Positions 17,780 to 41,950 of a stretch of 64,000 nt of DNA are shown here, piece after piece. The notes beneath the pieces were generated by a model, which was not told the DNA's origin, did no database searches, and worked only from the letters and a program-made list of their open reading frames with translations. Location of the stretch: the IMG/VR virus record IMGVR_UViG_3300028394_002328, positions 186,001 to 250,000 of that record; one strand, given 5' to 3'. Every line of letters starts with the position of its first letter. The first letter of the stretch is position 1. A program made the position numbers and the translations under genes.

Positions 17780-20290
17780 ATGGCCAATACTTTAAGAAAA
17801 TTTCAATACATATTAGAAGGTATTGATCAAGAACATTTAACTGATATTTTAGTTAAACGGTTAAAATCACGCTATCCTGATATCAGTACAAAATACGAAG
17901 AAGATGTATTACATGATGCGGCTATGGATGTTGCATCTTTTCACGCTGGTGCAGAAGAATTAGGCACTAGTGATATTGGGGCAATGATTAGAGAAGTCAT
18001 TAAAAATTTAGAAAGATTTAATGAGCGTGGTCAGGGTGAAAAAATGATTCCAAACTCAGTTAGAGGTTGGAGAATGAATGAAGAAACAGAACCTGAGCGT
18101 GTAGTTAGACAATTAAAAGCAGCAAAAAAGTATTTAGGTCAAGATCCTGAACCAAAAAAAGAACCTGAAGAGAAAGAAACAAACGAATCATACTGGGGCG
18201 GACCTAGTCCAGCACAATTGCGTTTTAATCGTGCTTTAAAAAAACAACAAAATAGTCCTGAAAATAAAGCAGATAGAGAAAAGTTTCAAAAAGAACTAGA
18301 CCGTATTATGCCTCCGCCGAAAAAAGAGCCTGAAGACAAAGAGGTGACTGAAGGTGCTGCGATATCAACTAGTGGAAAAACTGACTCAGGTTACACTTGG
18401 AAGTTTGAAGCAGGGCGTGAAGTGCCTTTTAAAACAGATATAGATGTAAACACATTTATTAGAGTAACTGATCCTGCTGGTAAGACTGTTGCTGGTGTTT
18501 GGGCAGATGTAGCGGGTGATTCACTAGTAGTTGAATATTCTCAAGTGTTTGATGAAGAGTTAAGAGGCAAAGGTCTTTATACAGATTTGTTAAAAAGTTT
18601 AAGTAAACAGTATGATGTAACATCAGATACAGATACGAATAATGCCGCTGTTAGCATTTATAAACGGTTAGGTGCAGATTATGATGCTCGCCAAGAAAAG
18701 CATACATTGCGTAAACAAGGTGTAGCGGAAGGCTCAGACCAAAATTATTTGTCTCAGATACCCAACTTGACTTGGAAACCAGTAAGCCGTAGTGTATGGA
18801 ATACTATACAAGACGAAGGACTCGATGAAGAACAAGATGCACCTAACCATACTGATTGGGTGATGGCCAATTTGACGATTAGTCCAAAAGATTCACAGGC
18901 ACTGCAAGCATTTGACAATGACGCTATTGAAGATTTCAACAGATTTGACATACATCTAAAATCCCGTTACCCTGGACTCACTGACTTAATTGATTATGAT
19001 AGAGGAACTGTAACTATTGTAAAGACAGTAACAGAGCAAGGTGTGGCGGAAGGCCGAAAAAAGAAAAACAAAAAAACTTCAAGATCCTTAGGCAGATATT
19101 TCTTCCCGGGCTATGGCTATTATGGTAGTGGAGAATCTGGTGAAGGCGGTGGTGATGGCGGCGGAGGAGAAAGTATGGCGGAAGGCACTAATGTTGACAT
19201 TGGTGGTATACAATTAAATGTTGTGGCTGATGGAGCTGAGGTAATCATTCGTCCATCTGTAGATGGATATCAAGCTGGTTATGCAGTATTTGACCGTGAT
19301 GGTAGTACTCTAGTACCTGCTGATCTTGCTATAGATGAAGAGTTTCGTGGTCAAGGCATCGCTAAAACCATTTACGATTATGTAAAGAGTCTTGGATTTA
19401 CTATTCGTCGCAGTAGTGATCAAACCAAAGCTGGTAAACACTTTTGGGATAAAAATCGCGGAGAAGATAGTCAAGTATGGGAGCAAACAATGACACTAGA
19501 AGAACTTGATGAGGCATGTTGGAAAGGTTATCATAAAGAAGGCATGAAGACCATGTTTGGCAAACGCTATCCTAACTGTGTGAAGAACACTAATGAAGAC
19601 CACCAACAATGTCCTGAATGCGGTGGTCCAATGTTTAGTGAAGAAATGATTAACGAAAAGAAAGATGCTTGCTACTATAAAGTTAAGAGCCGTTATAAAG
19701 TATGGCCCAGTGCGTATGCCAGTGGTGCATTAGTAAAGTGTCGCAAAAAAGGTGCTAGCAACTGGGGCAATAGCACAAAAAATGAAAGTTCTATATTAGA
19801 AGGTCTAGAACAAACTGATGAAAACTTACATAAATGGTTCAAAGAGAAGTGGGTAAGATTTGGTCCTGATGGCAAGATACGCGGTGATTGTGCTAGAGGA
19901 GATGATAGTGAGGGTAAACCAAAATGTTTACCACAAAGTAAAGCACAGAATTTAGGTAAGAAGGGTCGTGCTAGTGCGGCTGCTAGAAAGCGTAGAGAAG
20001 ATCCAAACCCCGAGCGTAGTGGTAAAGCAATCAATGTTGCTACTAAAAAGAAAACTTCCGAGAGTTCAATTCTTCAAGGAATAAGTGAAACAAAAGGCTT
20101 ACCAATGCCAGGTTCGTATGAACAAGAAAATAAACCTTTTCTTAGAAAAGGTGAACAGAAACTTATGGCTCTTACTACTGAACAAGAAGAATTAGATGAG
20201 AAGTGGAGTAATAAGTATAAGAGAAGTATTAATTGTAACAATCCAAAAGGATTTTCACAAAAGGCTCATTGCCAAGGAAAAAAGAAATGA
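17780..20290 (+). CDS. modular polyprotein with two GNAT-like domains and Cys/Lys-rich C-terminal modules
   Basis: GNAT motif A twice (DEELRGKGLYTDL; DEEFRGQGIAKTIY); QGVAEG linker twice; CWKGY..PNCVK, DACYYKVKSRY.VWPSAYASG and KWS.KYKRSINC.NPKGFSQKAHC modules. Confidence 0.7.
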   Translation: MANTLRKFQYILEGIDQEHLTDILVKRLKSRYPDISTKYEEDVLHDAAMDVASFHAGAEELGTSDIGAMIREVIKNLERFNERGQGEKMIPNSVRGWRMNEETEPERVVRQLKAAKKYLGQDPEPKKEPEEKETNESYWGGPSPAQLRFNRALKKQQNSPENKADREKFQKELDRIMPPPKKEPEDKEVTEGAAISTSGKTDSGYTWKFEAGREVPFKTDIDVNTFIRVTDPAGKTVAGVWADVAGDSLVVEYSQVFDEELRGKGLYTDLLKSLSKQYDVTSDTDTNNAAVSIYKRLGADYDARQEKHTLRKQGVAEGSDQNYLSQIPNLTWKPVSRSVWNTIQDEGLDEEQDAPNHTDWVMANLTISPKDSQALQAFDNDAIEDFNRFDIHLKSRYPGLTDLIDYDRGTVTIVKTVTEQGVAEGRKKKNKKTSRSLGRYFFPGYGYYGSGESGEGGGDGGGGESMAEGTNVDIGGIQLNVVADGAEVIIRPSVDGYQAGYAVFDRDGSTLVPADLAIDEEFRGQGIAKTIYDYVKSLGFTIRRSSDQTKAGKHFWDKNRGEDSQVWEQTMTLEELDEACWKGYHKEGMKTMFGKRYPNCVKNTNEDHQQCPECGGPMFSEEMINEKKDACYYKVKSRYKVWPSAYASGALVKCRKKGASNWGNSTKNESSILEGLEQTDENLHKWFKEKWVRFGPDGKIRGDCARGDDSEGKPKCLPQSKAQNLGKKGRASAAARKRREDPNPERSGKAINVATKKKTSESSILQGISETKGLPMPGSYEQENKPFLRKGEQKLMALTTEQEELDEKWSNKYKRSINCNNPKGFSQKAHCQGKKK
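18716..19054 (+). repeat. dispersed repeat CAAGGTGT(A/G)GCGGAAG encoding QGVAE linker
   Basis: Copies at 18716-18733, 19037-19054, partial 19176-19186, and 41407-41422 on the minus strand (16/16 identical to 19037-19052). Confidence 0.8.
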
Positions 20291-20333
20291 AAGATTATGA
20301 TTTTTATTGGAACAGAAAAGGATACCCAAAGAT

Positions 20334-20774
20334 ATGTTAGTAGATAATTTAAAAGTACTGTTAGCTAGTACACAAGCGTTTGCTATCAAGTCACAAAACT
20401 TTCATTGGAATGTTGAAGGCAGTAATTTCCCACAATATCACGAATTCTTTAATACATTATATGAAGATGTAAATGCTACCATAGATCCAATTGCCGAGTA
20501 TATTAGAATCCTAGGTCATTACACACCAGGCAGTTTATCTAGATATGCTGAATTAAGTATTATTCAAGACCAAACAAAGATTCCTCGTGCTCAATTAATG
20601 TTTGCTGAATTATTACAAGATTGTCACACATTAAGCCAATTAGTTGTTAATATGTTTGATGAAGCAACAAATGAGCGTCAACAAGGCATTGCTAATTACA
20701 TGGCTGAACTACAAGACTTGTATGGTAAAAAAGCTTGGTTTATTAATTCCACACTTAAAACTGAGCGTGAGTAA
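20334..20774 (+). CDS. dps: Dps/ferritin-like DNA protection protein
   Basis: NFHWNVEG.NF.QYHEFF..LYE...D.IAEYIR.LG is the Dps signature; ATG at 20334 preferred over TTG 20307. Confidence 0.88.
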   Translation: MLVDNLKVLLASTQAFAIKSQNFHWNVEGSNFPQYHEFFNTLYEDVNATIDPIAEYIRILGHYTPGSLSRYAELSIIQDQTKIPRAQLMFAELLQDCHTLSQLVVNMFDEATNERQQGIANYMAELQDLYGKKAWFINSTLKTERE

Positions 20775-21547
20775 TGAGACTTAATGAATTTGTGGTTGAC
20801 GAAGAAATAGTACAAGATGCTATTGTTAGAATACCACAGACTGAAATATTCAGTCAAGGTGATGATTATATCGGTCAATTAGAACGAGCGGCTAGCACAC
20901 AAATAAGTGCGATGTTTAAAAAGTTAAAGCCTGTACCTGATGATCAGGATTTAAGATATGGTATTATTCCAAAAGATGACGTTGGTCAATATCATGTTAT
21001 TATAGTTAATAACACTGATAGAATAATTGGTGACTTAGTATTATCTCCAGTAAAAGATTTTCCATTACAACCTGCATATACTGTAGAGTTCGTTACTGTC
21101 GCAGAAGAATATCGTGGCATGGGTGTCGGTAATCTATTATATAAGATAGCACTTAGAGATCAGGGAATACAATTAATAGCAGGCGAAAGCCAAACAGTAG
21201 GTGGTCGTAGAAATTGGATCAGTTTAAGTAAAACACCCGGTGTTATGATATCAGGGTGGGGTTGGGTCAATGTAAGTGAACAGGCTAATAGTAATCCTGA
21301 ACTAGTTAAAATTCAAAAGAAATTTGAAAAGTCAATGACAAAAGCAGGAGCAAAAAGTTTAGGTGTAAATAAAGGCCCTTCGAATACACTGTCTCGTGCG
21401 ATTAATAAACATTGGTATTTGTTCCCAGTACATGCTGGTGAAAAAGAATTTAAAGCAATCAATAACTCAATAAAGATTTATTATAATGATGTGTACAATC
21501 TTCCATTTTTATACAAGGTTGGATTGTTAGCAAATTGGGGTAATTAA
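20774..21547 (+). CDS. GNAT-like acetyltransferase domain protein
   Basis: VEFVTVAEEYRGMGVGNLLY motif A and QT.GG...W; MRLNEF start. Confidence 0.65.
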   Translation: MRLNEFVVDEEIVQDAIVRIPQTEIFSQGDDYIGQLERAASTQISAMFKKLKPVPDDQDLRYGIIPKDDVGQYHVIIVNNTDRIIGDLVLSPVKDFPLQPAYTVEFVTVAEEYRGMGVGNLLYKIALRDQGIQLIAGESQTVGGRRNWISLSKTPGVMISGWGWVNVSEQANSNPELVKIQKKFEKSMTKAGAKSLGVNKGPSNTLSRAINKHWYLFPVHAGEKEFKAINNSIKIYYNDVYNLPFLYKVGLLANWGN

Positions 21548-21559
21548 CTAAATAATAAT

Positions 21560-23290
21560 ATGAGAGCATTAGAATTTTTAAACGAAACCCAAGTCTTGGA
21601 CGAAATAGATATGAGTCCAAGCTCATTAAAGCAGTTAGCAGCAGGCACCGGTGCCATGGCAGGTATGGAATTTGAAATGTATGTGCCTGATGTTGCAGGA
21701 GGTGAAGATGAAGATTCAAGCCCAGAACCTGATTATGATGAAGATCAACCTGCAAGAAGTCTTGACCAAATATATGAATTTTTTGAAGCCGATGGTGAGT
21801 GGAATAGCCCATTTGAAGTTGGTAGATTACATAGCAAATTACAAGAAGAATATACAGAATGGGTAAGTGAAAAAATAAGTGAAGATTGGGATCATTCTCC
21901 AACCGAACATGTATATCAATGGGCAAAAGAAAATATTGAATATGAAGATAGAGATGAACTTGAAAAAATAGTTGAAAAGGCTGTAGAAGAAGGTCATGGT
22001 AATGAAATATATGATCAAGCGGATGAGGCTTTTAGAGAATCTATGCTTGAAGAATATATGAATGATGACTCAAATGAAAGAGAGTTTTTAAGAGATTCAG
22101 GCATTAGATTCATGAGTGATATTGAATCAGGCTATGACATTACTTGGCCATATTGGACATATCCAGAGGTTGGAGGTGAAAGAACTATAAAACAAGTTGC
22201 TTTACAGTTTATGACAGACTTAGGTCTTAACAACATAGCGGTAAGTGATAGTTACCACGGTTCTTATTATATGTCAAGCGGAGGCAACGATTGGACACCT
22301 ATTGGCCGTAGTAAACCAAATGATACTTACACTATAGAGCCAGATGGTAGTCTTACATCAAAGAAAGAACCCAGTGATTCAGGTTTAGAATTTGTAAGTA
22401 ATCCATTGCCCTTAGATGAAATGATCAATAGTTTAAATGAAGTAGTTCAATGGGCTAGAACAAATATTTGTTATACTAATAGAAGTACAGGTTTACACAT
22501 GAATGTAAGTGTACCTGGGTGCAGCCGTGAAAAATTAGACTATGTAAAACTTGCGCTATTATTAGGTGATGAATATGTATTAGACCAATTTGGTCGTTCA
22601 GCAAATAGTTTCGCAAAAAGTGCAATGAGTAGTTTACAGTCTAGAGCCACTTATATGCAAAGTGAACCGGAGTTACTTACCTTTTTTGATGAAATGAGAA
22701 AGGGTTTAAGTGTAGAGGCAGCAAAACTTATTCATAGTGGAAATACTAGCAAATATGTTAGTATTAATACTAAAGAGGGTTATATTGAATTTCGCAGCCC
22801 AGGTGGCGATTGGTTAAATGAAGATATACCTAAATTAGAAAATACACTATTAAGATTTGTAGTAGCATTAGATGCCGCTTGTGACCCACAAAAATATCGT
22901 ACAGAATATCTTAAAAAATTATATAAATTATTAAAACCTACAACTAAAGGCGATGCACTTGATGTTTTTGCCAAGTATTCATCTGGACAATTACAGAAAC
23001 AAGACTTAATAACTTTACTTAAAAGAGCAAGAGGTATACAAAAACCTATTCAGCCTATTCAAGCAAAAGTAAGTGCTGGCCCTGCTGAACCTGCATTTGG
23101 TCAACCACCAAGTAGGATGCCTGAATATCAAATTTATGACAGTAGAACTGGTGAAGAATATGAACTTTTTCAGGCATACGATGATGAAGCCGCGTTGAGT
23201 CGTTTAGATGATTATCGCCGCATGGCTAGAAATAGTGCTAGTTCGCTAGATCCTAATAGGTTTGTTCTCCGTCATGTGGTAAATGGATAA
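21560..23290 (+). CDS. putative amidoligase (COOH-NH2 ligase type)
   Basis: GMEFE, IEPDGSL, GLEFVS.P, STGLHMNVS, KYVSIN, IEFRSPG motifs; MRALEFLNE start. Confidence 0.75.
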   Translation: MRALEFLNETQVLDEIDMSPSSLKQLAAGTGAMAGMEFEMYVPDVAGGEDEDSSPEPDYDEDQPARSLDQIYEFFEADGEWNSPFEVGRLHSKLQEEYTEWVSEKISEDWDHSPTEHVYQWAKENIEYEDRDELEKIVEKAVEEGHGNEIYDQADEAFRESMLEEYMNDDSNEREFLRDSGIRFMSDIESGYDITWPYWTYPEVGGERTIKQVALQFMTDLGLNNIAVSDSYHGSYYMSSGGNDWTPIGRSKPNDTYTIEPDGSLTSKKEPSDSGLEFVSNPLPLDEMINSLNEVVQWARTNICYTNRSTGLHMNVSVPGCSREKLDYVKLALLLGDEYVLDQFGRSANSFAKSAMSSLQSRATYMQSEPELLTFFDEMRKGLSVEAAKLIHSGNTSKYVSINTKEGYIEFRSPGGDWLNEDIPKLENTLLRFVVALDAACDPQKYRTEYLKKLYKLLKPTTKGDALDVFAKYSSGQLQKQDLITLLKRARGIQKPIQPIQAKVSAGPAEPAFGQPPSRMPEYQIYDSRTGEEYELFQAYDDEAALSRLDDYRRMARNSASSLDPNRFVLRHVVNG

Positions 23291-23305
23291 CAAAAGGAGT
23301 ATATT

Positions 23306-23743
23306 ATGAAAAAAATTATAGCAATCGCATTATTGGTAATATCAACTACGGTTGACGCACAAAAAACACCACAAGGTGTTATATACGATTTCCCTATTAC
23401 TAGAGTATTAGATGGTGATACAGTAGCATTTCAGGCTACATTTTTACCACCTCCACTTAAACAAGAACTTAGTATAAGAGTATTTGGTGTAGATACTCCT
23501 GAAAAAGGATTTAGAGCCAAATGTCCACAAGAAGATCAAAGAGGACAGGCTGCTTCCGCATTTACAAAAGATTTAGTATCTCATGCACAAAAACGCCAAG
23601 TTGTTATCATGGACTGGGATAAATTTGGTGGGCGTGTATTAGGCGATGTAATCCTTGATGGTAAGAGTTTACGTGAACAACTTATTACAAATAATTATGC
23701 TAGAGCATACTTTGGCGAAGCAAAACAATCTTGGTGTAATTAA
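23306..23743 (+). CDS. staphylococcal nuclease-like (thermonuclease) with signal peptide
   Basis: RVLDGDT, IRVFGVDTPE, DKFGGRVLG motifs; MKKIIAIALLVISTTVDA signal peptide. Confidence 0.85.
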   Translation: MKKIIAIALLVISTTVDAQKTPQGVIYDFPITRVLDGDTVAFQATFLPPPLKQELSIRVFGVDTPEKGFRAKCPQEDQRGQAASAFTKDLVSHAQKRQVVIMDWDKFGGRVLGDVILDGKSLREQLITNNYARAYFGEAKQSWCN

Positions 23744-23748
23744 TATAA

Positions 23749-24324
23749 ATGATAACTGAATCATTCGTTGGTGAAACTGCGGTTATGGAGTTATATAAAA
23801 AACTCCCTGGCCTATCCAAACACAACTATAATACCATTGATAAATTAATGCGGATAATTGCACAAAAGCATGAACTTAGTAGTGATGCATTGAATGATTT
23901 ATTTGTGAAAAAATTTAATCGTAGTCCTGATAGTTGGGTTAAAGGAAAATTAGACGAATCTGATGTTGAATGTGATTTAGAACAAGAAGTAGAAAAGTTT
24001 GTAGATTGGGCTGCTAAAAAGTTGAATTTACAAACCACTCCCAAAATTGAACTAAGCATGGATACTGAAGAAGCACAAACTAATCATCATACTGGTAGCC
24101 ATACTGATGGTGATAACAGTGTTTGGGTATATGCTAAAAACCGTAATTTGGTTGACATACTAAGAACGGTATTTCACGAATTGGTTCATGTCAGACAAGG
24201 TGAATTGAATATGATTAAACCGGGATCTAGTTACCCTGGCAGCCCAATAGAAGTCATGGCAGATTGTTTAGCTGGCAAGTATATTAAGATATACGGTGAA
24301 AAGAATCACCATATTTTCCAATGA
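23749..24324 (+). CDS. zincin-like metallopeptidase domain protein
   Basis: RTVFHELVHVRQ (HExxH) with downstream E in SPIEV. Confidence 0.65.
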   Translation: MITESFVGETAVMELYKKLPGLSKHNYNTIDKLMRIIAQKHELSSDALNDLFVKKFNRSPDSWVKGKLDESDVECDLEQEVEKFVDWAAKKLNLQTTPKIELSMDTEEAQTNHHTGSHTDGDNSVWVYAKNRNLVDILRTVFHELVHVRQGELNMIKPGSSYPGSPIEVMADCLAGKYIKIYGEKNHHIFQ

Positions 24325-24725
24325 GACATTTTGAATTTATTACCGAACAGAAATCAATCACACAACATACCGAAGGTGGTTCGTTAGAAGGGTATGTTAT
24401 GTCTACAGATAAACCCAATATTAATAACTACTTACAAAGTCAAGGTGCAACACCTGAGTTAATAGACAATATCGCAAAACGGTATAAAACTTTGGGGTTA
24501 ATAAGAAACATGTATGTAGATGATGATTATCGTGGTCAAGGCATTGGTAATGATTTAGTAAGCAACGCAATTGATGATGCTGCTAATAACGGCGCAGAAG
24601 CCATTATATTAATCTCAGATACCGACGAAGATAACCCATTTGATTTAACAAAATGGTATGAGGGTTTTGGGTTTGAAGTAGTGGGTACGGCGGGTAATAA
24701 CCCTGTAATGATACTTGATCTTTAA
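24321..24725 (+). CDS. GNAT family acetyltransferase
   Basis: MYVDDDYRGQGIG motif A and L..WYEGFGF motif B; MRHFEFITE start. Confidence 0.8.
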   Translation: MRHFEFITEQKSITQHTEGGSLEGYVMSTDKPNINNYLQSQGATPELIDNIAKRYKTLGLIRNMYVDDDYRGQGIGNDLVSNAIDDAANNGAEAIILISDTDEDNPFDLTKWYEGFGFEVVGTAGNNPVMILDL

Positions 24726-24743
24726 GTCATCTTGTGTTATCAT
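24715..24743 (+). promoter_or_regulatory. sigma70-type promoter, probably giving a leaderless tilS-like mRNA
   Basis: TTGATC-17 nt-TATCAT; ATG at 24750 lies 6 nt after the -10 box and has no SD. Confidence 0.5.
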
Positions 24744-24749
24744 ACACAG

Positions 24750-25343
24750 ATGCTTAAATTACTTTTTCCATTACCCAAAAAATTGACCGTTGCTTGTAGC
24801 GGCGGTGTAGATAGTATGGCTGTATTAGATTTCTTGCGTAGAAATCATGAGGTTACTGTGGCCTTTTATCATCATAGTACACCTAACAGCGATGCTGCAT
24901 ATCAATTTGTAGCCAATTATTGTAGTGAACATGATTTACCACTATTCTTTGGAAAACTAAACGAATCCAAACCCAAAGAATTAAGTCAAGAAGAGTTTTG
25001 GAGAAATAAGCGTTACGATTTTCTTCGTGGATTTGACACGGTAATTACAGCACATCATTTAGATGATTGTGTAGAAACATATATTTGGTCATCATTACAC
25101 GGAAAAGCAAAACTCCCACATAGATATGTCCGTGGAAATGTTATGCGACCATTTTTAACTACTCCAAAAACAGAATTCATTTCATGGTGTGAACGACACC
25201 ATGTTAAATGGAGTGAGGATATCAGCAATAAAGACACTAATTATACTAGAAATTATATCAGACACGAACTAATGCCACATGCATTAAAGGTTAATCCTGG
25301 ATTAAGAACTACTGTTAAAAAAATTGTTGAGCGAGGTGGTTAA
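24750..25343 (+). CDS. tilS: TilS-like PP-loop ATPase (tRNA(Ile)-lysidine synthase catalytic domain only)
   Basis: VACSGGVDSM, TAHHLDD.VET, RPFL, W.ED.SN.D..YTRNYIRH; lacks the TilS C-terminal domains. Confidence 0.75.
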   Translation: MLKLLFPLPKKLTVACSGGVDSMAVLDFLRRNHEVTVAFYHHSTPNSDAAYQFVANYCSEHDLPLFFGKLNESKPKELSQEEFWRNKRYDFLRGFDTVITAHHLDDCVETYIWSSLHGKAKLPHRYVRGNVMRPFLTTPKTEFISWCERHHVKWSEDISNKDTNYTRNYIRHELMPHALKVNPGLRTTVKKIVERGG

Positions 25344-25985
25344 ATTAAACCTAGTATTGCATTATTCATGAATCATCCAGAATGCAGTGTATTATGTTGC
25401 TCTGGAATGTACGAAGCATTATCATGTGACTTTAATATAGAAATATTGCCGTTTAAAGATGTTAAATTAAAAAAACTTAAGAAGTATCACATTGTAGCCT
25501 TTCCTGGTGGTATTGGCGATAGCGATTCGTTTGAACATCTACTTAAAAACCGTGCTGATGATGTAACCGAATATATTCATAACGGTGGTAGGTACTTGGG
25601 CATTTGCATGGGAGCATACTGGGCAGGCAAATACTATTTTAAGTTGCTTGATGATGTAGAACCAGTACAATATATCAAACGCCGTAAAAGCGATATTAAA
25701 CGAAGTTATGCAACCATAGCAGATGTATTATGGAATGATGAACCACAATCAATGTACTTTTATGATGGGTGTGCATTGATAGGTGACCAAAATAAAATGA
25801 GTATTGTGTCAACCTATGCCAATGGTGATCCAATGGCTATCTACCAAAAACGAATTGGTTTGATTGGGTGCCACCCTGAAAGTATGCCAAGTTGGTACGA
25901 CAGACCCTATCTACAATCATATTGGCATGAATTTGCCCATCATAAACTACTATTATCATTTGTCAACAACTTAATGAAAGCGTAA
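25344..25985 (+). CDS. class I glutamine amidotransferase-like (BPL_N-type) protein; probable ATT start
   Basis: FPGG, YLGICMGAY (nucleophile Cys), CHPE (His-Glu); in-frame IKPSIALF precedes first ATG (25368) and follows SD GAGGTG. Confidence 0.72.
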   Translation: MKPSIALFMNHPECSVLCCSGMYEALSCDFNIEILPFKDVKLKKLKKYHIVAFPGGIGDSDSFEHLLKNRADDVTEYIHNGGRYLGICMGAYWAGKYYFKLLDDVEPVQYIKRRKSDIKRSYATIADVLWNDEPQSMYFYDGCALIGDQNKMSIVSTYANGDPMAIYQKRIGLIGCHPESMPSWYDRPYLQSYWHEFAHHKLLLSFVNNLMKA

Positions 25986-29112: not shown

Positions 29113-29844
29113 ATGAAAGATAATTTACAAGATTTAGTTGAACATACATATGGATTAGGTAAGCTAGACCTAATTAAAATCGTGGGTACTAAAACATCAA
29201 CACAGATGTTTGCATTGTCTGAGGACAAAAGCGTTATATTTTCAGGTAATTTTAAAACTCCAATTATTGAGTTTGATGGCACATTTGGTATGCCAAACTT
29301 AAGCAAACTCAAAACAATTTTGGGATTTGAAGATTATGATGAAAATGCTATCATTACAGTTTCTACACAAAAAACTGATGAAGGTGTACAGCCTAGTGCT
29401 ATTTTGTTTGAAACAAAAACTAGTGATTTCGTAAATAATTATAGGTTTATGAAGAAATCAGTAGTAGAAGATAAAATTAAAAGTGTTTCTTTTAAAGGTG
29501 CTACTTGGAACATAGAATTTGAGCCCACAGTAGCAGGTATTTTACGTTTGAAAAAACAGCATCAAGCCAATAGTGAAGAAGAAACTTTTACGGTTAAGGT
29601 TGAAAATGGTGATCTTAAAATTTACTTTGGAGATCCAACTACTCACTCAGGCAATTTTATATTTTATCCACAAGTAACAGGAACGTTGGCTAGATCAATG
29701 ATGTGGCCTATTAAAACTTTCTTGGCAATTATGGACTTGCCAGGTGACAAAACCGTAAGAATTTCTGATCAAGGTGTAGCTGAAATTGTCATTGACAGTG
29801 GACTTGCTATATACTACTATCGTTTACCGGCTCAAATTAAATGA
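29113..29844 (+). CDS. probable DNA polymerase sliding clamp (gp45-like)
   Basis: 243 aa alternating beta/alpha pattern typical of clamps, adjacent to the polymerase; no short diagnostic motif. Confidence 0.6.
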   Translation: MKDNLQDLVEHTYGLGKLDLIKIVGTKTSTQMFALSEDKSVIFSGNFKTPIIEFDGTFGMPNLSKLKTILGFEDYDENAIITVSTQKTDEGVQPSAILFETKTSDFVNNYRFMKKSVVEDKIKSVSFKGATWNIEFEPTVAGILRLKKQHQANSEEETFTVKVENGDLKIYFGDPTTHSGNFIFYPQVTGTLARSMMWPIKTFLAIMDLPGDKTVRISDQGVAEIVIDSGLAIYYYRLPAQIK

Positions 29845-34880: not shown

Positions 34881-35084
34881 ATGAAAGAATTTGTGCTTAA
34901 AGATATGAATCAATACACAGTTAGAGTTAAGAAAAATAGGTGTTTGAGACCACAAGAGTTGACTCATATTGAGTTTATCCAAGAAAGTAAAAACGATAAA
35001 GGTGAAGTAGTAGATACTTCAACCTATCAATTTTTCTTAACTGACAGTGAAATTAAAACTCTAGTAGCCAATTTGGTTGAATAA
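34881..35084 (+). CDS. hypothetical protein
   Basis: 67 aa ORF in operon. Confidence 0.6.
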   Translation: MKEFVLKDMNQYTVRVKKNRCLRPQELTHIEFIQESKNDKGEVVDTSTYQFFLTDSEIKTLVANLVE

Positions 35085-35085
35085 T

Positions 35086-35631: not shown

Positions 35632-35782
35632 ACTTTGGCGATTATGGAGCAAGGCATTGGGAGAAAAGTCCGGTGCCACGGATCAAGAAAGTGACCTAAT
35701 AGCTTTGGTTAGAACTTGTATTGTGATATCATATATAATTACAAATATGTTTATCATAGCAGGGATTATACGACATTGGTAA
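35600..35782 (+). CDS. small membrane protein
   Basis: WRLWSKALGEK...D.IALVRT followed by a hydrophobic helix. Confidence 0.55.
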   Translation: MEPTQLPTRVKLWRLWSKALGEKSGATDQESDLIALVRTCIVISYIITNMFIIAGIIRHW

Positions 35783-35800
35783 TTAATTTAGGAATTTAAA

Positions 35801-35989
35801 ATGAGTGATGTTAGAAATCGCATGGCAGAATTAATGGAACCTATTGACAAGCAAATTATGATGTGCGATAATAGGGAAGATTTGCTAATGTTAGCCTGTG
35901 CTATGTTGACTTCAGTTAAAACGATATTTGACCAAGAGTTAGGTAAAAAAGCCCGTATCCAATTATTTAAAGATTATATAGATGAGTAA
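35801..35989 (+). CDS. hypothetical protein
   Basis: 62 aa ORF with AGGA SD. Confidence 0.6.
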   Translation: MSDVRNRMAELMEPIDKQIMMCDNREDLLMLACAMLTSVKTIFDQELGKKARIQLFKDYIDE

Positions 35990-36833: not shown

Positions 36834-38173
36834 TGAGGACGTATGATAAACGAATTGGTTTTTTAGTTAGTTTCCAAACACTAGTACCTCATGGTGGTAT
36901 AGGACAATTCGCTAAAAGTTTCTGCGAATTGATGGATAGTCATAATATTAAAGTTGATATTATTACTGACAAAGAACCAAAAAATAATGAGTTTGTAAAC
37001 TCATTAAAAGCAAATATTGTTTATCCTACTGAGTCATTCACATACACAGATCATAGTAATATCTTTATGTATGGTGATACCTTTTGCTATGAACGAATGG
37101 CTAACTTTCGCAACGCAATAATTAAAGCCACAACCAATAACCTATATGACGCATTAATTTGTAACACATATGAAACTATACAAGTTGCTAGTACAATGGG
37201 TCTTGAAGATGTAATTCAAATCATTGCCTATACTCATTTAGAAAGTCAAATCTTTAAGGATACTAAAAATCCTTTCTTACATAGTACCAATGAAATGATG
37301 CGTAATCAATTAGAAATGAATGGATTGTATGTAGGAACACAAAGCAAATTCAATCAAATTTCAATGAGCAATAGCGCATGGCATCTACCTATTCCAATTA
37401 CTGAGCGTGGGTTACTAGAAGAACATCATAAACCACGTGAAGGTGTATTGTTTATTGGTCGTTGGGAAGAAGGTAAAAATCCCGAAACATATTTAGAGTT
37501 GATTGAAAAAACTAAGTTACCTGCGAGGGTAATGACTAATGCCAATGGTGCAAAAAAGTTTGAAGAACGCTTTAAAAAGATAGGCGTAACTGATTATAAA
37601 ATTGCTGTTAGTATTATTGGTAAAGAAAAAGTAGATTTCATTACTAGTTGTAGAGTAGCATTCAATCCTAGTACAGTAGAAAGTTATGGTATGGCTTTCT
37701 ATGAGCAACATATTCAATTACCTACAGTTGTTTTAGAAAATCAACGTTGGACTAATAACTTTGATAAAAATCATTTCTTTACTGTAAATAAAAAGAACAT
37801 GGTTGAAACTGTATTAGATTTATACAACAATGTTCCTGATGCTAAAACATGGTATGCTAATAATATATTAGAAGTATATCAGAGTAAAGAGAATGATGTA
37901 TTTCACAAATGGAATGAATGTTTTAACAAGTTTACTAGTAAACAATCAAACAGTAATACCGCAAAAATATGTGAAGAAACTACTGTAAAGTATATTGATT
38001 TTACTAATAGTTTAGGTCGTAGATTATTGTGTATTGACGATATTAAATCTGTATTGACAAACAAACATAAATTCCGTATAATATACACAGATAATGATAC
38101 ATACTTATCTAAAGATCCAACATTTGAACCAGTAGAGGAAGTAACAGGCTTAAGCCTATTTGAAGGATTATGA
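36833..38173 (+). CDS. GT-B fold (GT4-like) glycosyltransferase
   Basis: PHGGIGQF N-terminal loop, LFIGRWEEGKNP, PSTVESYGMAFYE; TGATG coupling to queE. Confidence 0.78.
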   Translation: MRTYDKRIGFLVSFQTLVPHGGIGQFAKSFCELMDSHNIKVDIITDKEPKNNEFVNSLKANIVYPTESFTYTDHSNIFMYGDTFCYERMANFRNAIIKATTNNLYDALICNTYETIQVASTMGLEDVIQIIAYTHLESQIFKDTKNPFLHSTNEMMRNQLEMNGLYVGTQSKFNQISMSNSAWHLPIPITERGLLEEHHKPREGVLFIGRWEEGKNPETYLELIEKTKLPARVMTNANGAKKFEERFKKIGVTDYKIAVSIIGKEKVDFITSCRVAFNPSTVESYGMAFYEQHIQLPTVVLENQRWTNNFDKNHFFTVNKKNMVETVLDLYNNVPDAKTWYANNILEVYQSKENDVFHKWNECFNKFTSKQSNSNTAKICEETTVKYIDFTNSLGRRLLCIDDIKSVLTNKHKFRIIYTDNDTYLSKDPTFEPVEEVTGLSLFEGL

Positions 38174-38988
38174 AAAAAGTATTAATAACAGGTAGTTCAG
38201 GATACATTGGCAGTCATCTTACTAATCTATTAAAAGATGAATATGAAGTACATGGACTTGATCGTGTTGAACCACAAGTAGCACCACATACATTTTATCA
38301 TTGTGACATTAACCGTCAGTTTAACTTAGATGAAGAGTTTGATGCTGTAGTACATTTAGCCGCTCTAGTTAATGTAGGAGAAAGTGAAAAGCAACCTATT
38401 CAATACTACATTACTAACCTAAATGGTACTATGAATGTAGTTAATAAGATAAAAACTAAAAACTTTATTTTTTCTAGTACCGGTGCTGCACAAGACTGTA
38501 TAAGTGCATATGGTATTAGTAAGCGAGCGGCAGAAGATGTAGTAAGGTCGTATTCTGAAATGGTTAGTATGGACTATACTATCTTTAGATTTTATAATGT
38601 CATTGGTAGCACAGTAGTTAATCCTACTAACCCAGATGGGTTATTTTACAATTTAATTAAAGCTCGGGCGACTGGTCAATTTACTATACATGGTAGTGAT
38701 TATAATACTAGTGATGGCACTTGTGTTAGAGATTATGTTCATGTAGATGAGATTTGTAATTCTATTAAATTGGCAATTGAACGGCCAGCAAATCAAACAG
38801 AAGCATTAGGTCATGGTAAAGGATATACTGTTAAAGAAATGGTAACTATCTTTGAAAGTATTAATAATTGTAAAATCAATGTGAAGACAGGCCCTCGTAG
38901 AAAGGGTGATATTGAACATTATGTACTTAAGAACCCATCATCTTACATGCATGAGTTGTATAATATTGGTCAACTACTAAAGATTTAA
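38170..38988 (+). CDS. NAD-dependent nucleotide-sugar epimerase (GalE-like SDR)
   Basis: ITGSSGYIG, HLAALVNVGES, FSST, YGISK (YxxxK), FRFYNV, DGTCVRDYVHV. Confidence 0.88.
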   Translation: MKKVLITGSSGYIGSHLTNLLKDEYEVHGLDRVEPQVAPHTFYHCDINRQFNLDEEFDAVVHLAALVNVGESEKQPIQYYITNLNGTMNVVNKIKTKNFIFSSTGAAQDCISAYGISKRAAEDVVRSYSEMVSMDYTIFRFYNVIGSTVVNPTNPDGLFYNLIKARATGQFTIHGSDYNTSDGTCVRDYVHVDEICNSIKLAIERPANQTEALGHGKGYTVKEMVTIFESINNCKINVKTGPRRKGDIEHYVLKNPSSYMHELYNIGQLLKI

Positions 38989-38990
38989 AT

Positions 38991-40349
38991 TTACTTTAAA
39001 CCTGCACTGACCCAAGGATCAGCAATTACTAGAGTATCATCTCTCTGCATTACATTGCTATAATCATGTGCGATAATATCATTACTAAATCCTAATTTAG
39101 TACCGGTTGCTGTAACTGATTTAAGTGTTTTATAGAAATTAGTATATTGACGATATTGCGGATCTAATGGACTGCCTTCGTCAATACTATACATCATATC
39201 TATAATCATTTCATCATAGTCAGGATCTAATTCTTCTAATCGTTCCATAACTACCTGATCAAACTTTTCAACTCCCAATTGAATTGGTTGTTTAGTAGTT
39301 TCTATAAACTTAGGTAAGTGTGGGTTATTAGCATTTTTCTCGCAATAATTAAGAAATGCTAAGAATGGATTTTTAGCGGTAGAGATATCGCCATTCTCAG
39401 GTATTAATACTTTAATTACTGGACCTTCTTCTTTAGCAAAAACATGTGCGTCTGTACCATGACCGATATAACTATAGCCTAATTTATTCATATAATCATT
39501 AAGCATGTTGACATGTTTATTATAGTCAAACTCGGTTAATTCTTGCTCTTCAATTTTTCTAGCAACGATACCTTTATTCTTTATTAATTTCTCTTCATCC
39601 CACCTAACTGGGTTAATCATTGGATACAAGTATTTGGTATCGGTGGCTCCGATATCAAACAGACTTCTCGGTGGAACTAGATGTTGTTTTCTAAGTTTAT
39701 CAAACTTTTCAGCATCTACTACTATTGGTTCCCCAATAGTTACTTGACCAATCGCAACTGCAGGGCCATTACCAGTTCTAACAATACCAACCGTTCTACC
39801 AACATATGGTCTAAGACTGTCAGTTTTTCTAGATTCGTATTTCTTTTTGCCGTCAACAATTAAACTAGCATAGTCAGTATTGCCATCACTTCTGACATTG
39901 ATGCCAATAGTTGGTTTATTGTCTGTATTTTCTGTTATATTTTTTTCTGATGGCTTGACAATCTCTGCACTTGATAAATCTAATGGTCCTGCTATCCAAT
40001 ACTCATCAATATCATCAGATTCATACTTCCACGCATTAGGATCATAGTTAGCACTAGTCATACCCTTTGTTCGCATAAAAGTTTTATGTCCTGGTATTGG
40101 ATATATTTTATTAGATATTTTACTAGCATTAATTCTAATTAATGTATCTCCTGTCCATCTACTAATATGTTCTTTATCAGTAAAACTATTACCGGGTATC
40201 ATTTTCCCTTCTGATTCTATATAGTGAGCATAACCTCTTTTCACTGGTAATTTTTTAGAATCAATATACTTTTGAAATTGATTTCCTTCTACCCACTTAT
40301 ATAGATAGGTGGGTACTTGAACTGATTCTAATAACTCTTTAATACGCAT
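38991..40349 (-). CDS. tripartite protein: ART-like domain + ASCH domain + Ser/Thr kinase-like domain
   Basis: LYK...GNSFT...DEY (ART-like, weak); GINV...LIVDGKKKYESR...AIGQV (ASCH); IGHGTDAHVF, VIK, MERL, HDYSNVM, VIADP (kinase); MRIKELLE start. Confidence 0.65.
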   Translation of the reverse strand: MRIKELLESVQVPTYLYKWVEGNQFQKYIDSKKLPVKRGYAHYIESEGKMIPGNSFTDKEHISRWTGDTLIRINASKISNKIYPIPGHKTFMRTKGMTSANYDPNAWKYESDDIDEYWIAGPLDLSSAEIVKPSEKNITENTDNKPTIGINVRSDGNTDYASLIVDGKKKYESRKTDSLRPYVGRTVGIVRTGNGPAVAIGQVTIGEPIVVDAEKFDKLRKQHLVPPRSLFDIGATDTKYLYPMINPVRWDEEKLIKNKGIVARKIEEQELTEFDYNKHVNMLNDYMNKLGYSYIGHGTDAHVFAKEEGPVIKVLIPENGDISTAKNPFLAFLNYCEKNANNPHLPKFIETTKQPIQLGVEKFDQVVMERLEELDPDYDEMIIDMMYSIDEGSPLDPQYRQYTNFYKTLKSVTATGTKLGFSNDIIAHDYSNVMQRDDTLVIADPWVSAGLK

Positions 40350-41950
40350 TAATGCTTCAATAATAGAGTGCCTAATACACCAGGGTCATTTGCCGTTAAA
40401 TCAGGCTCCCCGGGGGCAACAATAACATTCCACTTCATGGATTTATTATTTTTACCCTTAGTATTCCATTCATCATAACTTAGAATACTATTTTTGCTTA
40501 TACCATACTTATCGGCGAGGCGCTGTTTTAGTTCAGGTAATTCATCAGGTATTACTTGCCATTGACCTTCAGGTCCTTTAACTAAATTCTTTTTAGAATC
40601 CTTAACTAATAGGTCATAAAACAAACTACTAGGAACGATACGACTATTCTTAGTTGTGTCTAAGTTTGGATCATTTCTCTTAATTTGTTTTTCTTGGCTA
40701 GTACTTGCGCCTTCACTCCAATTAATAATAAAGTTGCTAGGCTTACTAGCCATTGCAGCCTTTGCTACTTTAGTATAAGCATAAAACTTAACATCAGGTA
40801 ATGAGTTTGCAAGGTCAAATGCCATGTCCATATACTCAGGGCTAAAGAAGTCTCCAGCATCATGCCAACGAATACTTACTGAATAACCACCTTTTTTACC
40901 CTTTGCTTCTTCTTTACTAATTTCTTGTGTTAGTTGTTCAAAGAACTCATCAGGATGATTTAGTAGATATGTAAGTATACGACCATCGCTTAACCACGGA
41001 CCAGCGAATTGAACTTTACCGCCCTTCATAGCAAAGCAATCTACTTTACAACTACCAGCACCTGGACATGTATTAACAACAATTAACTCATTTGTATTTT
41101 CATCTAGTGCGATACCAACTAGAGCAGCAAATCCAATGTTAAAAAATTGTTCTTGTGCTCCATCACTATGCTTCATCTTCTCATTCTTTTTAAGAAGTGA
41201 TTTTGGTCTTTCCTTTAACCCTGCTTTAATAGCGTCAGTATTATATTTTTTACCGTCAGCATTATAGTATCCAACTACTGAACTACGATGGACATAAGGT
41301 AAATTATATTTGTCTGTTTTCTTCTTTTCTTGATTACGAATACGGTCTAGATAATCTGTTAACTCTTGACCTTTTAATTCACGGGTGCTAGCAGGTAGTG
41401 CTGTTGCTTCCGCCACACCTTGTTCGTGTAGTTTTTTGTTAGGATCTCTAACATCAGGAAAATCCCATTTATTGGTTTGTGAAAATTCTTCTCTAGCTTC
41501 TCTTCTAGACATGCCATATATTTTTTCAAATTCTCGATCAGATAATTCAGGATCATCAAGGTCCATGTCTAACTCAGCCATCTTGCTTTCCGACACATTA
41601 ACTACGGGTTTATTTCCGTAAACTTTTCTATCTTTACCTATTATTCTTCCGGTTTCGCTTCTACTACCAATGTGCTTACTGGCTAAACTTTGACCAGGTT
41701 TTACTCTTACACGATTTGGCGGTAATTGTGTAATCTTTCCACCTTTATTTAAAAAGTCTGCTACAGCATCATCGGTTTCTTTACTAAAATCAGATTTCAT
41801 CTTGAAATCTTCATCTACTTCCTGTTCGGGTTCAGGTTCCTCACCTTGTGCGGATTTAGCAATAAATTGCTGAGGGGTCATTATTTGGATACCTTCAGGA
41901 GCACCTGGTAATTCTGGTTCAACTCCCTCAAATAATTCTTTAATATTCAT
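40349..41950 (-). CDS. modular protein with C-terminal GP88-like (radical SAM-like) domain
   Basis: TCPGAGSCKVDCFA, IRWHDAGDF, FYAYTK; MNIKELFE start and QGVAE linker. Confidence 0.65.
   Translation of the reverse strand: MNIKELFEGVEPELPGAPEGIQIMTPQQFIAKSAQGEEPEPEQEVDEDFKMKSDFSKETDDAVADFLNKGGKITQLPPNRVRVKPGQSLASKHIGSRSETGRIIGKDRKVYGNKPVVNVSESKMAELDMDLDDPELSDREFEKIYGMSRREAREEFSQTNKWDFPDVRDPNKKLHEQGVAEATALPASTRELKGQELTDYLDRIRNQEKKKTDKYNLPYVHRSSVVGYYNADGKKYNTDAIKAGLKERPKSLLKKNEKMKHSDGAQEQFFNIGFAALVGIALDENTNELIVVNTCPGAGSCKVDCFAMKGGKVQFAGPWLSDGRILTYLLNHPDEFFEQLTQEISKEEAKGKKGGYSVSIRWHDAGDFFSPEYMDMAFDLANSLPDVKFYAYTKVAKAAMASKPSNFIINWSEGASTSQEKQIKRNDPNLDTTKNSRIVPSSLFYDLLVKDSKKNLVKGPEGQWQVIPDELPELKQRLADKYGISKNSILSYDEWNTKGKNNKSMKWNVIVAPGEPDLTANDPGVLGTLLLKH

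Follow-up and report, generated by a model that had tools for sequence, protein, structure and literature searches.

Why would a 16-nucleotide sequence be kept letter for letter in two genes on opposite strands of an AT-rich phage genome? The question arose from a 64,000-nucleotide stretch of DNA (the window), which lies in a 335-kb T4-like freshwater phage. A preliminary description, made from the sequence alone, had noted that a stretch encoding QGVAE is conserved at the DNA level and had proposed that it doubles as a microhomology for the in-frame shuffling of effector modules. Here we confirm the observation, show that protein modules are exchanged at the linker, and find that exchange by short homology is the best inference. 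We further infer that the peptide is a cutting site for the capsid maturation protease, a possibility that the preliminary description missed. We found no description of the motif in the part of the literature that we could search.

An in-frame linker in two modular proteins

We first examined the copies of the 16-mer CAAGGTGTGGCGGAAG in the window. It is exact at 19037-19052 (+) and 41407-41422 (-), and the copy at 18716-18731 (+) differs by one base (GTA for GTG), whereas dinucleotide shuffles of the window expect 0.03 matches at up to 2 mismatches. A fourth site, 19176-19186, is TGGCGGAAGGC. All four are in frame, three in one open reading frame (ORF) and one in another:

17780..20290 (+): ORF P0001 (836 aa), a multi-module protein comprising, in order, an N-terminal helical part, low-complexity KKEPE repeats, GNAT-like 1, an unknown cassette, a basic/Gly-rich spacer, GNAT 2 and small Cys-containing modules including DUF5872
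18713..18733 (+): linker 1, AAA CAA GGT GTA GCG GAA GGC (K-QGVAE-G), one base off the core consensus
19034..19054 (+): linker 2, GAG CAA GGT GTG GCG GAA GGC (E-QGVAE-G), the full 21-nt consensus
19169..19186 (+): variant linker, GAA AGT ATG GCG GAA GGC (E-S-M-A-E-G), which shares TGGCGGAAGGC with linkers 1 and 2
40349..41950 (-): ORF P0002 (533 aa), comprising a leader, an acidic spacer, a SutA-RBD-like module, a further module, the linker and a conserved C-terminal part with a GP88 domain (nt 40688-41197)
41405..41425 (-): linker, GAA CAA GGT GTG GCG GAA GCA (E-QGVAE-A), directly before the conserved C-terminal part (ATALPAS...)

The C-terminal modules of P0001 are shared with cyanophage hypothetical proteins and with L116, the gene at the matching position in a related contig. 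The 335-kb genome has no further copy at up to 2 mismatches. A fourth QGVAE peptide at 29770 (CAAGGTGTAGCTGAAA) lies inside a folded 243-aa protein next to the DNA polymerase; its homologue in L116 reads QGATE, and we therefore treat it as coincidence.

Next, we searched relatives and found that the 16-mer is the core of a roughly 20-nt element, nAG CAA GGT GTG GCG GAA GGC, always read as x-Q-G-V-A-E-G. The element recurs, often 2-6 times per gene, in many uncultured viral contigs, in frame and between unrelated modules of 'beads-on-a-string' proteins.

The linker is conserved at the DNA level

We then asked whether codon usage could account for this identity. With the codon usage of this genome, in which GTG is 9.7% of Val codons and GCG is 7.8% of Ala codons, one QGVAE would use exactly these five codons with P = 0.0024, and two independent copies would share all five codons with P = 0.019. 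To avoid selecting for the linker itself, we collected 64 non-identical orthologues of P0002 using peptide patterns unrelated to it. Their 35 GVAE linkers use GGT in 35/35 cases, GTG in 31/35 (89%, against 7% elsewhere in the same ORFs; p = 2e-30) and GCG in 34/35 (97%, against 5% elsewhere; p = 6e-42). Positions outside the searched 16-mer are also fixed: the preceding K/E/Q codon ends in G in 88% of cases (background 29%), and the following Gly is GGC in 82% (background 30%). The conserved codons are a specific sequence and not simply the most GC-rich choice, because CAA, GGT and GAA are kept. Although any single 16-mer occurs many times in a collection of this size, what differs is multiplicity and context. 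Of 120 loci, 34 hold 2 or more copies, against 0 of 233 for two synonymous control 16-mers, and linker-like context is 114/150 for the consensus, against 5/87 and 37/92 for the controls. Together with the shuffles and codon tests, these results refute chance plus codon bias.

Synonymous conservation is also what an RNA signal would give, and the core contains AAGG/GGTG-like purine-rich stretches and rare codons that could slow ribosomes at domain boundaries. However, no Rfam family matches in the window, no self-complementarity is visible by eye in the 20-mer, and no conserved start codon follows it. The element is always in one reading frame and always between modules, and a role as an RNA structure, pause site or internal ribosome-binding site does not explain why breakpoints fall there. 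We consider such a role very unlikely.

Modules are exchanged at the linker

To investigate whether module differences between relatives break at the linker, we clustered the modules on either side of it. Of 32 multi-member upstream module clusters, 31 join 2 or more different downstream clusters, and the reverse holds for 36 of 37. In 36 of 36 pairs with one flank at least 85% identical and the other flank unrelated at 120-210 nt, similarity ends within 9 nt of the linker in these ungapped comparisons. Consistent with this, the 64 orthologues of P0002 carry 0-6 cassettes between the same leader and the same C-terminal part.

The window's own cassettes behave in the same way:

18734..19036 (+): cassette of unknown function (aa 319-419), bounded by linkers 1 and 2
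19187..19481 (+): GNAT 2 cassette (Pfam Acetyltransf_7/1 at aa 496-539, nt 19265-19396), absent, in frame, from a variant in sequencing run X7

The first of these recurs at 80-97% nucleotide identity in a second locus, L216, inside a different polyprotein, where it is flanked on both sides by consensus QGVAEG and the outer flanks are unrelated. Independent metagenome assemblies (Logan) of other runs, which provide contigs rather than raw reads and include some contigs from related phages, gave further variants. A contig of run X11 replaces exactly 18734-19034 with 793 other bases. A contig of run X7 lacks 19161-19481 and carries AGT GTA GCG GAA GGA (S-V-A-E-G) at the variant linker. X1 and X11 contigs join another module, like that at 17000-17100 in the upstream ORF, to linker 2 at 19037. 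Contigs of other runs end or diverge at 18713/18716/18733 around linker 1, and those of X1, X7 and X18 do so at 19035/19054 around linker 2.

All relatives are metagenome contigs, and the frequent stops at the linkers show that the repeat does create branches in assembly graphs, raising the possibility that assemblers joined different phages at a shared short repeat. Several lines of evidence make this artefact highly improbable. The joints are always in frame, the same arrangements recur in contigs from different samples, and syntenic genomes carry different cassette sets inside otherwise collinear genes. Moreover, X1 contigs, an independent assembly, bridge both plus-strand linkers of the window with no differences, and 16-21 nt is probably below the final k-mer sizes of the usual assemblers.

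Together, these results show, with high confidence, that the roughly 20-nt sequence is the point at which cassettes are exchanged, inserted, lost or replaced, in frame, between genes of one phage and between phages. The three tests put forward in the preliminary description (relatives, synonymous positions and breakpoints) all came out in its favour, although that the modules are 'effectors' remains an inference. We infer, with moderate confidence, that exchange happens by recombination within the short identical stretch. Every exchange regenerates the same sequence, which would explain why rare codons persist in AT-rich genomes.

A homology of 16-21 nt is, however, short for efficient homologous recombination, and a sequence-specific enzyme, such as a homing-type nuclease, a recombinase or an annealing protein, is not excluded. 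In such a scenario, breaks or joins made at the 20-mer would drive cassette mobility and the peptide would be tolerated or co-opted. In support of this idea, a specific sequence is conserved, including at synonymous positions -1 and +18 outside the searched core, breakpoints are extremely sharp, and the element crosses phage lineages with and without T4-type head genes. T4-like phages are also known to carry many homing endonucleases, such as T4 segB, segD and segE. By contrast, no candidate enzyme was found next to the linker genes: a staphylococcal-nuclease homologue at 23306-23743 is the only nuclease nearby, and it is not sequence-specific by family. A cleaved target would normally be selected to diverge rather than stay constant, and neither the strict reading frame nor the pattern of residues at non-consensus junctions (below) is explained. 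We regard this alternative as unlikely.

The peptide resembles a prohead-protease site

The peptide x-G-V-A-E↓G/A fits the T4 prohead-protease site (V/I/L/M)-x-E↓, with an aliphatic residue at P3, any residue at P2 and Glu at P1. The genome encodes a Peptidase_S77 (gp21) homologue and a Gp23-type capsid protein, which has L-A-E↓S where T4 gp23 has L-T-E↓A. At the junction before the conserved C-terminal part of P0002, 57 of 57 orthologues have Glu at P1 and V/L/I/M at P3, with P2 free, whatever the DNA. By sequence pattern, [VILM]-x-E followed by G/A/S occurs 7 times in P0001 and 3 times in P0002, each at a module boundary, although the motif is short and about 3 are expected by chance in 836 aa. 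Besides the linkers, the candidate sites include:

18344..18352 (+): V-T-E↓G, just before GNAT-like module 1
19505..19513 (+): L-D-E↓A, just before the CW-GY-K module, which in other contigs follows QGVAE directly
19793..19801 (+): I-L-E↓G (..NESSILE↓G), between DUF5872 and the KWFKEKW module, a junction conserved in L116
41588..41596 (-): V-S-E↓S, at the end of the SutA-like module; L131, a locus that lacks this module, joins ..EQEVSE↓SKMAEL.. at this point

The proteins that carry the linker begin with short leaders resembling the T4 capsid-targeting sequence (CTS). In T4, the 10-residue leader targets proteins to the capsid, residues 8 and 10 govern processing, and the internal proteins are diverse apart from that leader (PMC9026906, PMC3012670). 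Leaders such as MKTYQFITE and MRAQEFITEG resemble the MKTYQEFIAE↓A of T4 IPII/IPIII, and such leaders are enriched in linker ORFs (26/72 against 82/950, p = 1e-9). The leader of P0001 fits the T4 pattern less well than those of its neighbours:

17780..17818 (+): leader of P0001, MANTLRKFQYILE↓G, ending in I-L-E followed by G
41927..41950 (-): leader of P0002, MNIKELFE↓G, conserved across the family as M-x-x-x-x-L-[FMY]-E-G
16652..17770 (+): upstream ORF (372 aa), the first gene of the same-strand run that contains P0001, with the CTS-like leader MKINQIILE↓T, internal ..VAEA / ..MAEA sites and no Pfam family
20774..21547 (+): ORF with leader MRLNEFVVDEE and a GNAT domain
21560..23290 (+): ORF with leader MRALEFLNE↓T and an Amidoligase_2 domain
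24321..24725 (+): ORF with leader MRHFEFITE↓Q and a GNAT domain
38991..40349 (-): ORF with leader MRIKELLE↓S and a weak ASCH match, directly downstream of P0002

Late-promoter-like motifs precede both operons. There are only 5 NATAAATA motifs in 15-44 kb, and that the following two are late promoters is inferred from T4-like phages:

16620..16627 (+): GATAAATA, a T4-type late-promoter-like motif 25 nt before ORF 16652
42008..42015 (-): GATAAATA, a late-promoter-like motif about 65 nt before the P0002 start

Moreover, twin-arginine (Tat) export signal motifs sit 5-8 residues after some such sites inside polyproteins, where they would work only after cleavage. We therefore propose, with moderate confidence, that these proteins are loaded into the prohead as polyproteins and cut into separate modules, which, by analogy with the T4 internal proteins and Alt, would then be delivered into the host with the DNA. 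Cleavage, packaging and injection are all inferred from sequence, without protein-level data. Two large linker-bearing records, G002 (343 kb and 99% complete) and G004, show no Pfam S77 or S78 protease and no Gp23 capsid protein; either another Glu-specific protease acts there, or the spread of the linker does not depend on that protease.

It is also possible, but unlikely, that the peptide is only a flexible inter-domain linker that is never cut, with the DNA identity reflecting recent common descent of duplicated or transferred segments and no part played in recombination. Linkers between domains are common, variants (QDMAE, EHVAE, KKVAE and QGITE) show that the peptide can drift, and some relatives join the same modules without any GVAE. 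However, the flanks of different copies are unrelated while the 20-mer is identical, so descent of whole segments does not explain it. The use of rare codons in the linker-blind sample and the coincidence of breakpoints with the element also count against this reading, and the invariant Glu at P1, the aliphatic residue at P3 and the placement of Tat signals argue for cleavage.

Comparison with known systems

Polyvalent proteins of phages and conjugative elements (Iyer et al. 2017, PMC5512222) similarly combine many unrelated effector-type domains in one polypeptide, have highly variable architectures, and are predicted to travel with the DNA into the new host and to be processed into separate products. 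Those proteins usually carry their own peptidase domain, whereas none was found here by Pfam; no prohead-protease site logic is described in that paper, and the word 'linker' does not occur in its main text. In the jumbo phages phiKZ, 201phi2-1 and SPN3US, many inner-body and ejection proteins are cut C-terminal to Glu at a short motif, with several sites per protein, by a gp21-related protease (PMC9026906, PMC5694885, PMC7411985). There the motif is S/A/G-x-E rather than V/I/L/M-x-E, the cuts remove propeptides rather than separating exchangeable cassettes, and no DNA-level conservation of the site is reported.

In T4, processing of IPI-III, Alt, gp23 and gp24 by gp21 (Mullaney and Black 1996; reviewed in PMC9026906 and PMC3012670) shares with the proteins described here an N-terminal leader of about 8-13 residues of the form M-(K/R)-x-x-(D/E/Q)-(F/L)-(I/L)-x-E, expected cleavage after Glu with an aliphatic residue at P3, and enzymes as cargo (T4 Alt; here GNAT, amidoligase and GP88-domain proteins). 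T4 cargo proteins are single units with one or two cuts, whereas here several cargo modules are strung together with a repeated site, and packaging and cutting are inferred without experimental evidence. Finally, the diverse internal-protein genes of T-even phages each appear to begin with a nearly identical DNA stretch that encodes the capsid-targeting leader and has been proposed to mediate recombinational shuffling (Repoila et al. 1994, EMBO J 13:4181; cited in PMC9026906 and PMC3012670). In both cases, a T4-type phage with a gp21 protease has very diverse cargo proteins that share only a short leader or cleavage motif, a short DNA stretch is kept near-identical next to unrelated coding sequence, and cargo content differs between related phages. 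Here, however, the conserved stretch is about 20 nt, not about 70 bp, carries no translation start, and lies inside genes, in frame, as a linker between modules of one polypeptide. It occurs up to 6 or more times per gene and is spread over many uncultured freshwater phage lineages, including some without detectable T4-type head genes.

The linker sequence in the window and its genome

In the window, the 16-mer CAAGGTGTGGCGGAAG occurs twice as an exact copy and once with a single difference, and part of it is shared by a fourth site. All four are in frame, and the flanks of the copies are unrelated:

18716-18731 (+): copy with one difference (GTA for GTG), read K-QGVAE-G, in ORF 17780-20290 (P0001, 836 aa)
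19037-19052 (+): exact copy, read E-QGVAE-G, in P0001
19176-19186 (+): TGGCGGAAGGC, within GAA AGT ATG GCG GAA GGC, read E-S-M-A-E-G, in P0001
41407-41422 (-): exact copy, read E-QGVAE-A, in ORF 40349-41950 on the other strand (P0002, 533 aa)

Dinucleotide shuffles of the window expect 0.03 matches at up to 2 mismatches, and the whole 335,035-bp record (G000) has no other copy at that threshold. A fourth QGVAE peptide, encoded by CAAGGTGTAGCTGAAA at 29770-29785 (ORF 29113-29844), uses GTA GCT and lies inside a folded 243-aa protein next to the family-B DNA polymerase; because its homologue in L116, the gene at the position matching P0001 in a related contig, reads QGATE, we consider it a coincidence and not a linker. 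Given the codon usage of this genome (GTG is 9.7% of Val codons and GCG 7.8% of Ala codons), a QGVAE would use these exact codons with P = 0.0024, and two independent copies would agree in all five codons with P = 0.019. P0001 also has low-complexity spacers beside module borders, at 18150-18350 and 19060-19170, comprising KKEPE-type repeats and a basic segment followed by a Gly/Glu-rich run (..GSGESGEGGGDGGGGES). AlphaFold2 prediction of P0001 without an alignment (mean pLDDT 43) was too poor to place domain borders; the linkers fall in low-confidence stretches, but so does most of the protein. No Rfam family matched in the window.

The record is an IMG/VR virus, estimated to be 95% complete, that encodes a T4 gp21-type prohead protease (Peptidase_S77; G000 326977-327411, E = 7e-29) and a gp23-type major capsid protein (324522-325529, E = 2e-97). 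Near-identical DNA occurs in freshwater metagenomes of 2017, 2022 and 2025, from 16 studies. Several small modules of P0001 resemble hypothetical proteins of T4-like cyanophages. A cultured cyanophage protein, annotated 'structural protein' in Synechococcus phage S-B43 (MN018232 14590-15873), strings together the same small Cys-containing modules as the P0001 C terminus (DUF5872, the KWF..GTPKC module and the CW..PNCV module) but has no QGVAE linker and no leader resembling the T4 capsid-targeting sequence (CTS), so it says nothing about packaging. In INPHARED, no cultured phage holds the linker at 19 nt or more, although a bare 16-nt match could not pass the E-value limit of that search, and none holds a close relative of P0002. 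Elsewhere in the window, a GC-elevated stretch (6771-16575; 0.42-0.48 against about 0.35) encodes a row of six proteins with Gly_rich_2, Laminin_G_3 and fn3 domains that may be fibre or receptor-binding proteins. Outside the window, the ORF containing position 19124 of G000:C1 is a single open frame of about 6348 codons.

The element in other viral contigs

We next searched for the 16-mer in other viral contigs, together with two synonymous control 16-mers. The number of loci alone means nothing, because the controls were also recovered, in 113 and 120 loci; what separates the consensus from them is multiplicity and context.

Occurrence of the consensus 16-mer and of two synonymous controls
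Measure: consensus (GTG GCG); control GTT GCT; control GTA GCA
Loci with 2 or more copies: 34 of 120; 0 of 113; 0 of 120
Sites open in the QGVAE frame: 150 of 158; 87 of 110; 92 of 116
Linker-like context (K/E/Q before, G/A/E/D after): 114 of 150; 5 of 87; 37 of 92

Copies within a locus are typically 150-700 nt apart and the flanks of the consensus copies are highly diverse, with more than 200 different flanking module families seen in about 200 loci. By contrast, the common-codon control CAAGGTGTTGCTGAAG (GTT GCT) is dominated by one conserved protein motif, FGG(S/G)RQGVAEA, in many viral contigs, an unrelated family that happens to contain QGVAE. Genes such as those in the loci L083, L116, L199 and L216 are strings of 50-110-residue modules separated by QGVAEG. 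In three other loci (L034, L053 and L082), some ORFs stop two to seven codons after a consensus linker, as if the gene ended in an empty acceptor site or had lost its last cassette. In cellular genomes, the 20-mer was found in 6 loci, of which L127 (3 copies on an 8.9-kb MAG contig) and L124 look like binned phage contigs, whereas the GC-rich hits are probably chance.

Conservation at the DNA level

We did not rely on a scan of the collection with the degenerate pattern CARGGNGTNGCNGARGG but instead, to avoid circularity, fetched relatives of P0002 using peptide patterns that do not include the linker. This gave 64 non-identical orthologues holding 35 GVAE linkers, in which GGT is used 35/35 times (60% elsewhere in the same ORFs), GTG 31/35 times (7% elsewhere; p = 2e-30) and GCG 34/35 times (5% elsewhere; p = 6e-42). 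In the set anchored on the 16-mer, the positions outside the anchor are unbiased, and they are fixed too: the preceding K/E/Q codon ends in G in 107 of 122 cases, against a background of 29%, and the following Gly is GGC in 86 of 105 cases, against a background of 30%. The conserved element is therefore about 20 nt, nAG CAA GGT GTG GCG GAA GGC, and its variants are nearly all single third-position steps away (GTA, GCA or GAG), or have GTG changed to ATG, giving M-A-E. The preliminary description had inferred that the linker doubles as a microhomology for in-frame shuffling of effector modules, a reading that depended on the copies being more identical than codon bias predicts; they are far more alike than that.

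Module swaps break at the linker

To investigate whether modules are exchanged at the element, we clustered the 15 residues on each side of 294 distinct sites. Of 32 upstream clusters with more than one member, 31 are joined to two or more different downstream clusters, and the reverse holds for 36 of 37. We then chose pairs only by a near flank at least 85% identical and a distal opposite flank (120-210 nt away) that is unrelated. In all 36 such pairs, nucleotide similarity ends within 9 nt of the linker, although it was free to end anywhere in about 120 nt.

The P0002 family shows the process in one gene. The leader (M-x-x-x-x-L-F/M/Y-E-G-x-E-P-K-L-P-G-A...) and the C-terminal part (ATKLPAQTRE... 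plus the GP88 domain) are constant, and between them sit 0 to 6 cassettes, many of them also seen in unrelated polyproteins. The window's own cassette behaves in the same way. Residues 319-419 of P0001 (18734-19036), which lie between its two QGVAE linkers, recur at 80-97% nucleotide identity in L216 inside a different polyprotein, where they are flanked on both sides by the full consensus and where identity drops to background beyond the linkers.

Independent assemblies (Logan contigs from four freshwater sequencing runs of four studies) add further variants. A 1409-nt contig of run X11 matches 18482-18733 and 19035-19395, with 793 other bases in place of the cassette. A contig of run X7 lacks 19161-19481 (the GNAT 2 cassette), in frame, and reads S-V-A-E-G at the joint. 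Contigs of runs X1 and X11 join a module like 17000-17100 to position 19037, and many contigs end or diverge at 18716, 18733, 19035 and 19054. Notably, X1 contigs bridge both plus-strand linkers with no differences, so those junctions are not an artefact of one assembly.

The linker peptide as a candidate prohead-protease site

T4 gp21 cuts after Glu in an aliphatic-x-Glu motif. We verified the T4 gp23 site ..F-L-T-E|A and the leaders of IPII and IPIII, MKTYQEFIAE|A, in NC_000866; the role of the leader and of its positions 8 and 10 is described in PMC9026906. The capsid protein of the phage studied here has ..L-L-A-E|S at the matching place, and every linker is V/M-A-E followed by G or A, with M-A-E in the variant. 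At the junction before the conserved C-terminal part of P0002, all 57 alignable orthologues have Glu at P1 and V/L/I/M at P3, with P2 free (D, A, E, N, S, G, T or P), whether or not the DNA is the consensus. In P0001, the [VILM]-x-E pattern followed by G/A/S occurs seven times, each at a module border. In P0002 it occurs three times, and one of these is the point at which a relative, L131, lacks the SutA-like module.

Linker-bearing ORFs often begin with leaders that closely resemble the T4 capsid-targeting sequence, such as MKTYQFITE, MKAYEFITE, MRAQEFITEG and MRAHEFIVE (26 of 72, against 82 of 950 other ORFs of the same loci; p = 1e-9). P0002 starts MNIKELFE|G, and its neighbours in the window start MRHFEFITE, MRALEFLNE, MKINQIILE and MRIKELLE, although the leader of P0001 itself (..FQYILE|G) is a weaker fit. 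The window holds a cluster of such genes, several of which carry enzyme domains (GNAT, Amidoligase_2 and ASCH), and other genes and motifs accompany them:

16652, 20774, 21560, 24321, 38991(-) and 40349(-): genes with CTS-like leaders
20307-20774, 23306-23743 and 24732-25985: interleaved genes for a ferritin/Dps-like protein, a staphylococcal-nuclease homologue, a PP-loop ATPase and a class-I glutamine amidotransferase
16620-16627 (+) and 42008-42015 (-): GATAAATA motifs, like T4-type late promoters, just upstream of the two linker-bearing operons

Only five NATAAATA motifs occur in 15-44 kb, and late-promoter-like motifs are commoner upstream of linker ORFs (16/72, against 76/949). Outside the window, at G000:C1 74969-75729, two adjacent small ORFs start MRAREFITEA and MRAHEFLTES, the closest matches in this genome to the T4 IP leader, and are candidate simple internal proteins.

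Twin-arginine (Tat) signal motifs (..RRGFLKGLGAAA..) occur 5-8 residues after [V/I]-x-E sites in the middle of polyproteins in five loci (L078 at aa ~465, L212 at aa ~332, L159 and L169 at aa ~116, and L104 at aa ~220), and once directly after a CTS-like leader, at the N terminus in L052. A Tat signal works only at an N terminus, so this placement makes sense only if the site is cut, and it suggests that some released modules are exported to the host periplasm. In the absence of protein-level evidence, cleavage remains an inference from sequence. Moreover, the gp21-type protease and the gp23-type capsid protein were found in 3 of 5 other large linker-bearing records but not in G002 (343 kb, 99% complete) or G004. 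These two jumbo records carry 3-4 clustered linkers in the same kind of leader-plus-module proteins (within L212, G002:C1:171000-184000, at G002:C1:173494-181230, and L213, at G004:C1:127145-138759), yet neither shows a Gp23 capsid protein by Pfam, or an S77 or S78 protease even at loose thresholds. The linker system is not confined to recognizable T4-like phages.

A model for cassette exchange and delivery

Together, these results show that a standard 20-nt in-frame element marks the borders of exchangeable cassettes, and that cassette gain, loss and replacement between relatives happen at it. We infer that exchange occurs by recombination within the short identical stretch, during co-infection or between paralogous genes. 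Each event would recreate the consensus, so that the element evolves in concert while the cassettes diverge, and a copy that has drifted may simply stop taking part. However, 16-21 nt is short for ordinary homologous recombination, and the conserved codons are a specific sequence rather than the most GC-rich choice, so an enzyme that recognizes the sequence is not excluded. It is possible, although we consider it unlikely, that the 20-mer is a dedicated recombination site at which a phage-encoded, sequence-specific activity cuts or anneals. In that case, these phages would run an integron-like, in-frame 'plug-and-play' system, shared across unrelated jumbo-phage lineages, that assembles and reshuffles polyproteins of capsid-delivered effectors, and the same six residues would serve as the protease site that later releases each cassette product. 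We identified no candidate nuclease or recombinase, albeit without a co-occurrence analysis across genomes.

We further infer that the encoded peptide is the prohead-protease site: the leader would load the whole string into the prohead, the protease would separate the modules, and they would leave with the DNA, such that a new cassette would be packaged and released without further adaptation. Phage mosaicism is usually described at the level of genes, whereas here one standard adaptor, kept at the DNA level, lets protein modules be exchanged in frame, within and between genomes. If the peptide is also the maturation-protease site, each swap automatically yields a cargo that is packaged, released and delivered, and anything lying between a CTS-like leader and these sites would be a candidate virion-delivered protein in uncultured freshwater jumbo phages, including modules that seem destined for the host periplasm through Tat. 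Such an arrangement offers a template for modular cargo loading of T4-type capsids.

Comparison with known systems

We found no description of the motif in the literature that could be searched, in which QGVAE matches were all to alpha-synuclein and DUF5872 appeared only in an unrelated context. The closest known cases are the T-even IP loci, T4 capsid-targeting and gp21 processing, the polyvalent proteins of Iyer et al. (PMC5512222) and the multiply-cut internal proteins of phiKZ-like phages; the present system shares the logic of each but is a member of none. As in the T-even IP loci, near-identical DNA lies next to otherwise unrelated coding cassettes, and related phages differ in cassette content with breakpoints at the conserved stretch. 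In those loci, however, the conserved stretch holds the translation start and leader of each separate gene, whereas here the element is internal to reading frames, with no start codon or ribosome-binding site conserved after it. As in T4-type capsid-targeted internal proteins, the phage encodes a gp21-family protease and a gp23-type capsid protein, leaders resembling MKTYQEFIAE are present and, at the sequence level, the motif has an aliphatic residue at P3 and Glu at P1. As in polyvalent proteins, several unrelated effector-type domains occur in one phage polypeptide (P0001 has 2 GNAT-like domains, DUF5872, several small modules and unknown cassettes) and architectures vary between relatives, but no peptidase family, which is frequent although not universal in that group, was found in P0001, P0002 or their neighbours by Pfam or PHROGs. 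The motif also differs from that of the phiKZ-like phages. The system joins two things described separately in T-even phages, the capsid-targeting leader with gp21 processing and the proposed shuffling of internal-protein genes through conserved leader DNA, in what we infer to be one intragenic device.
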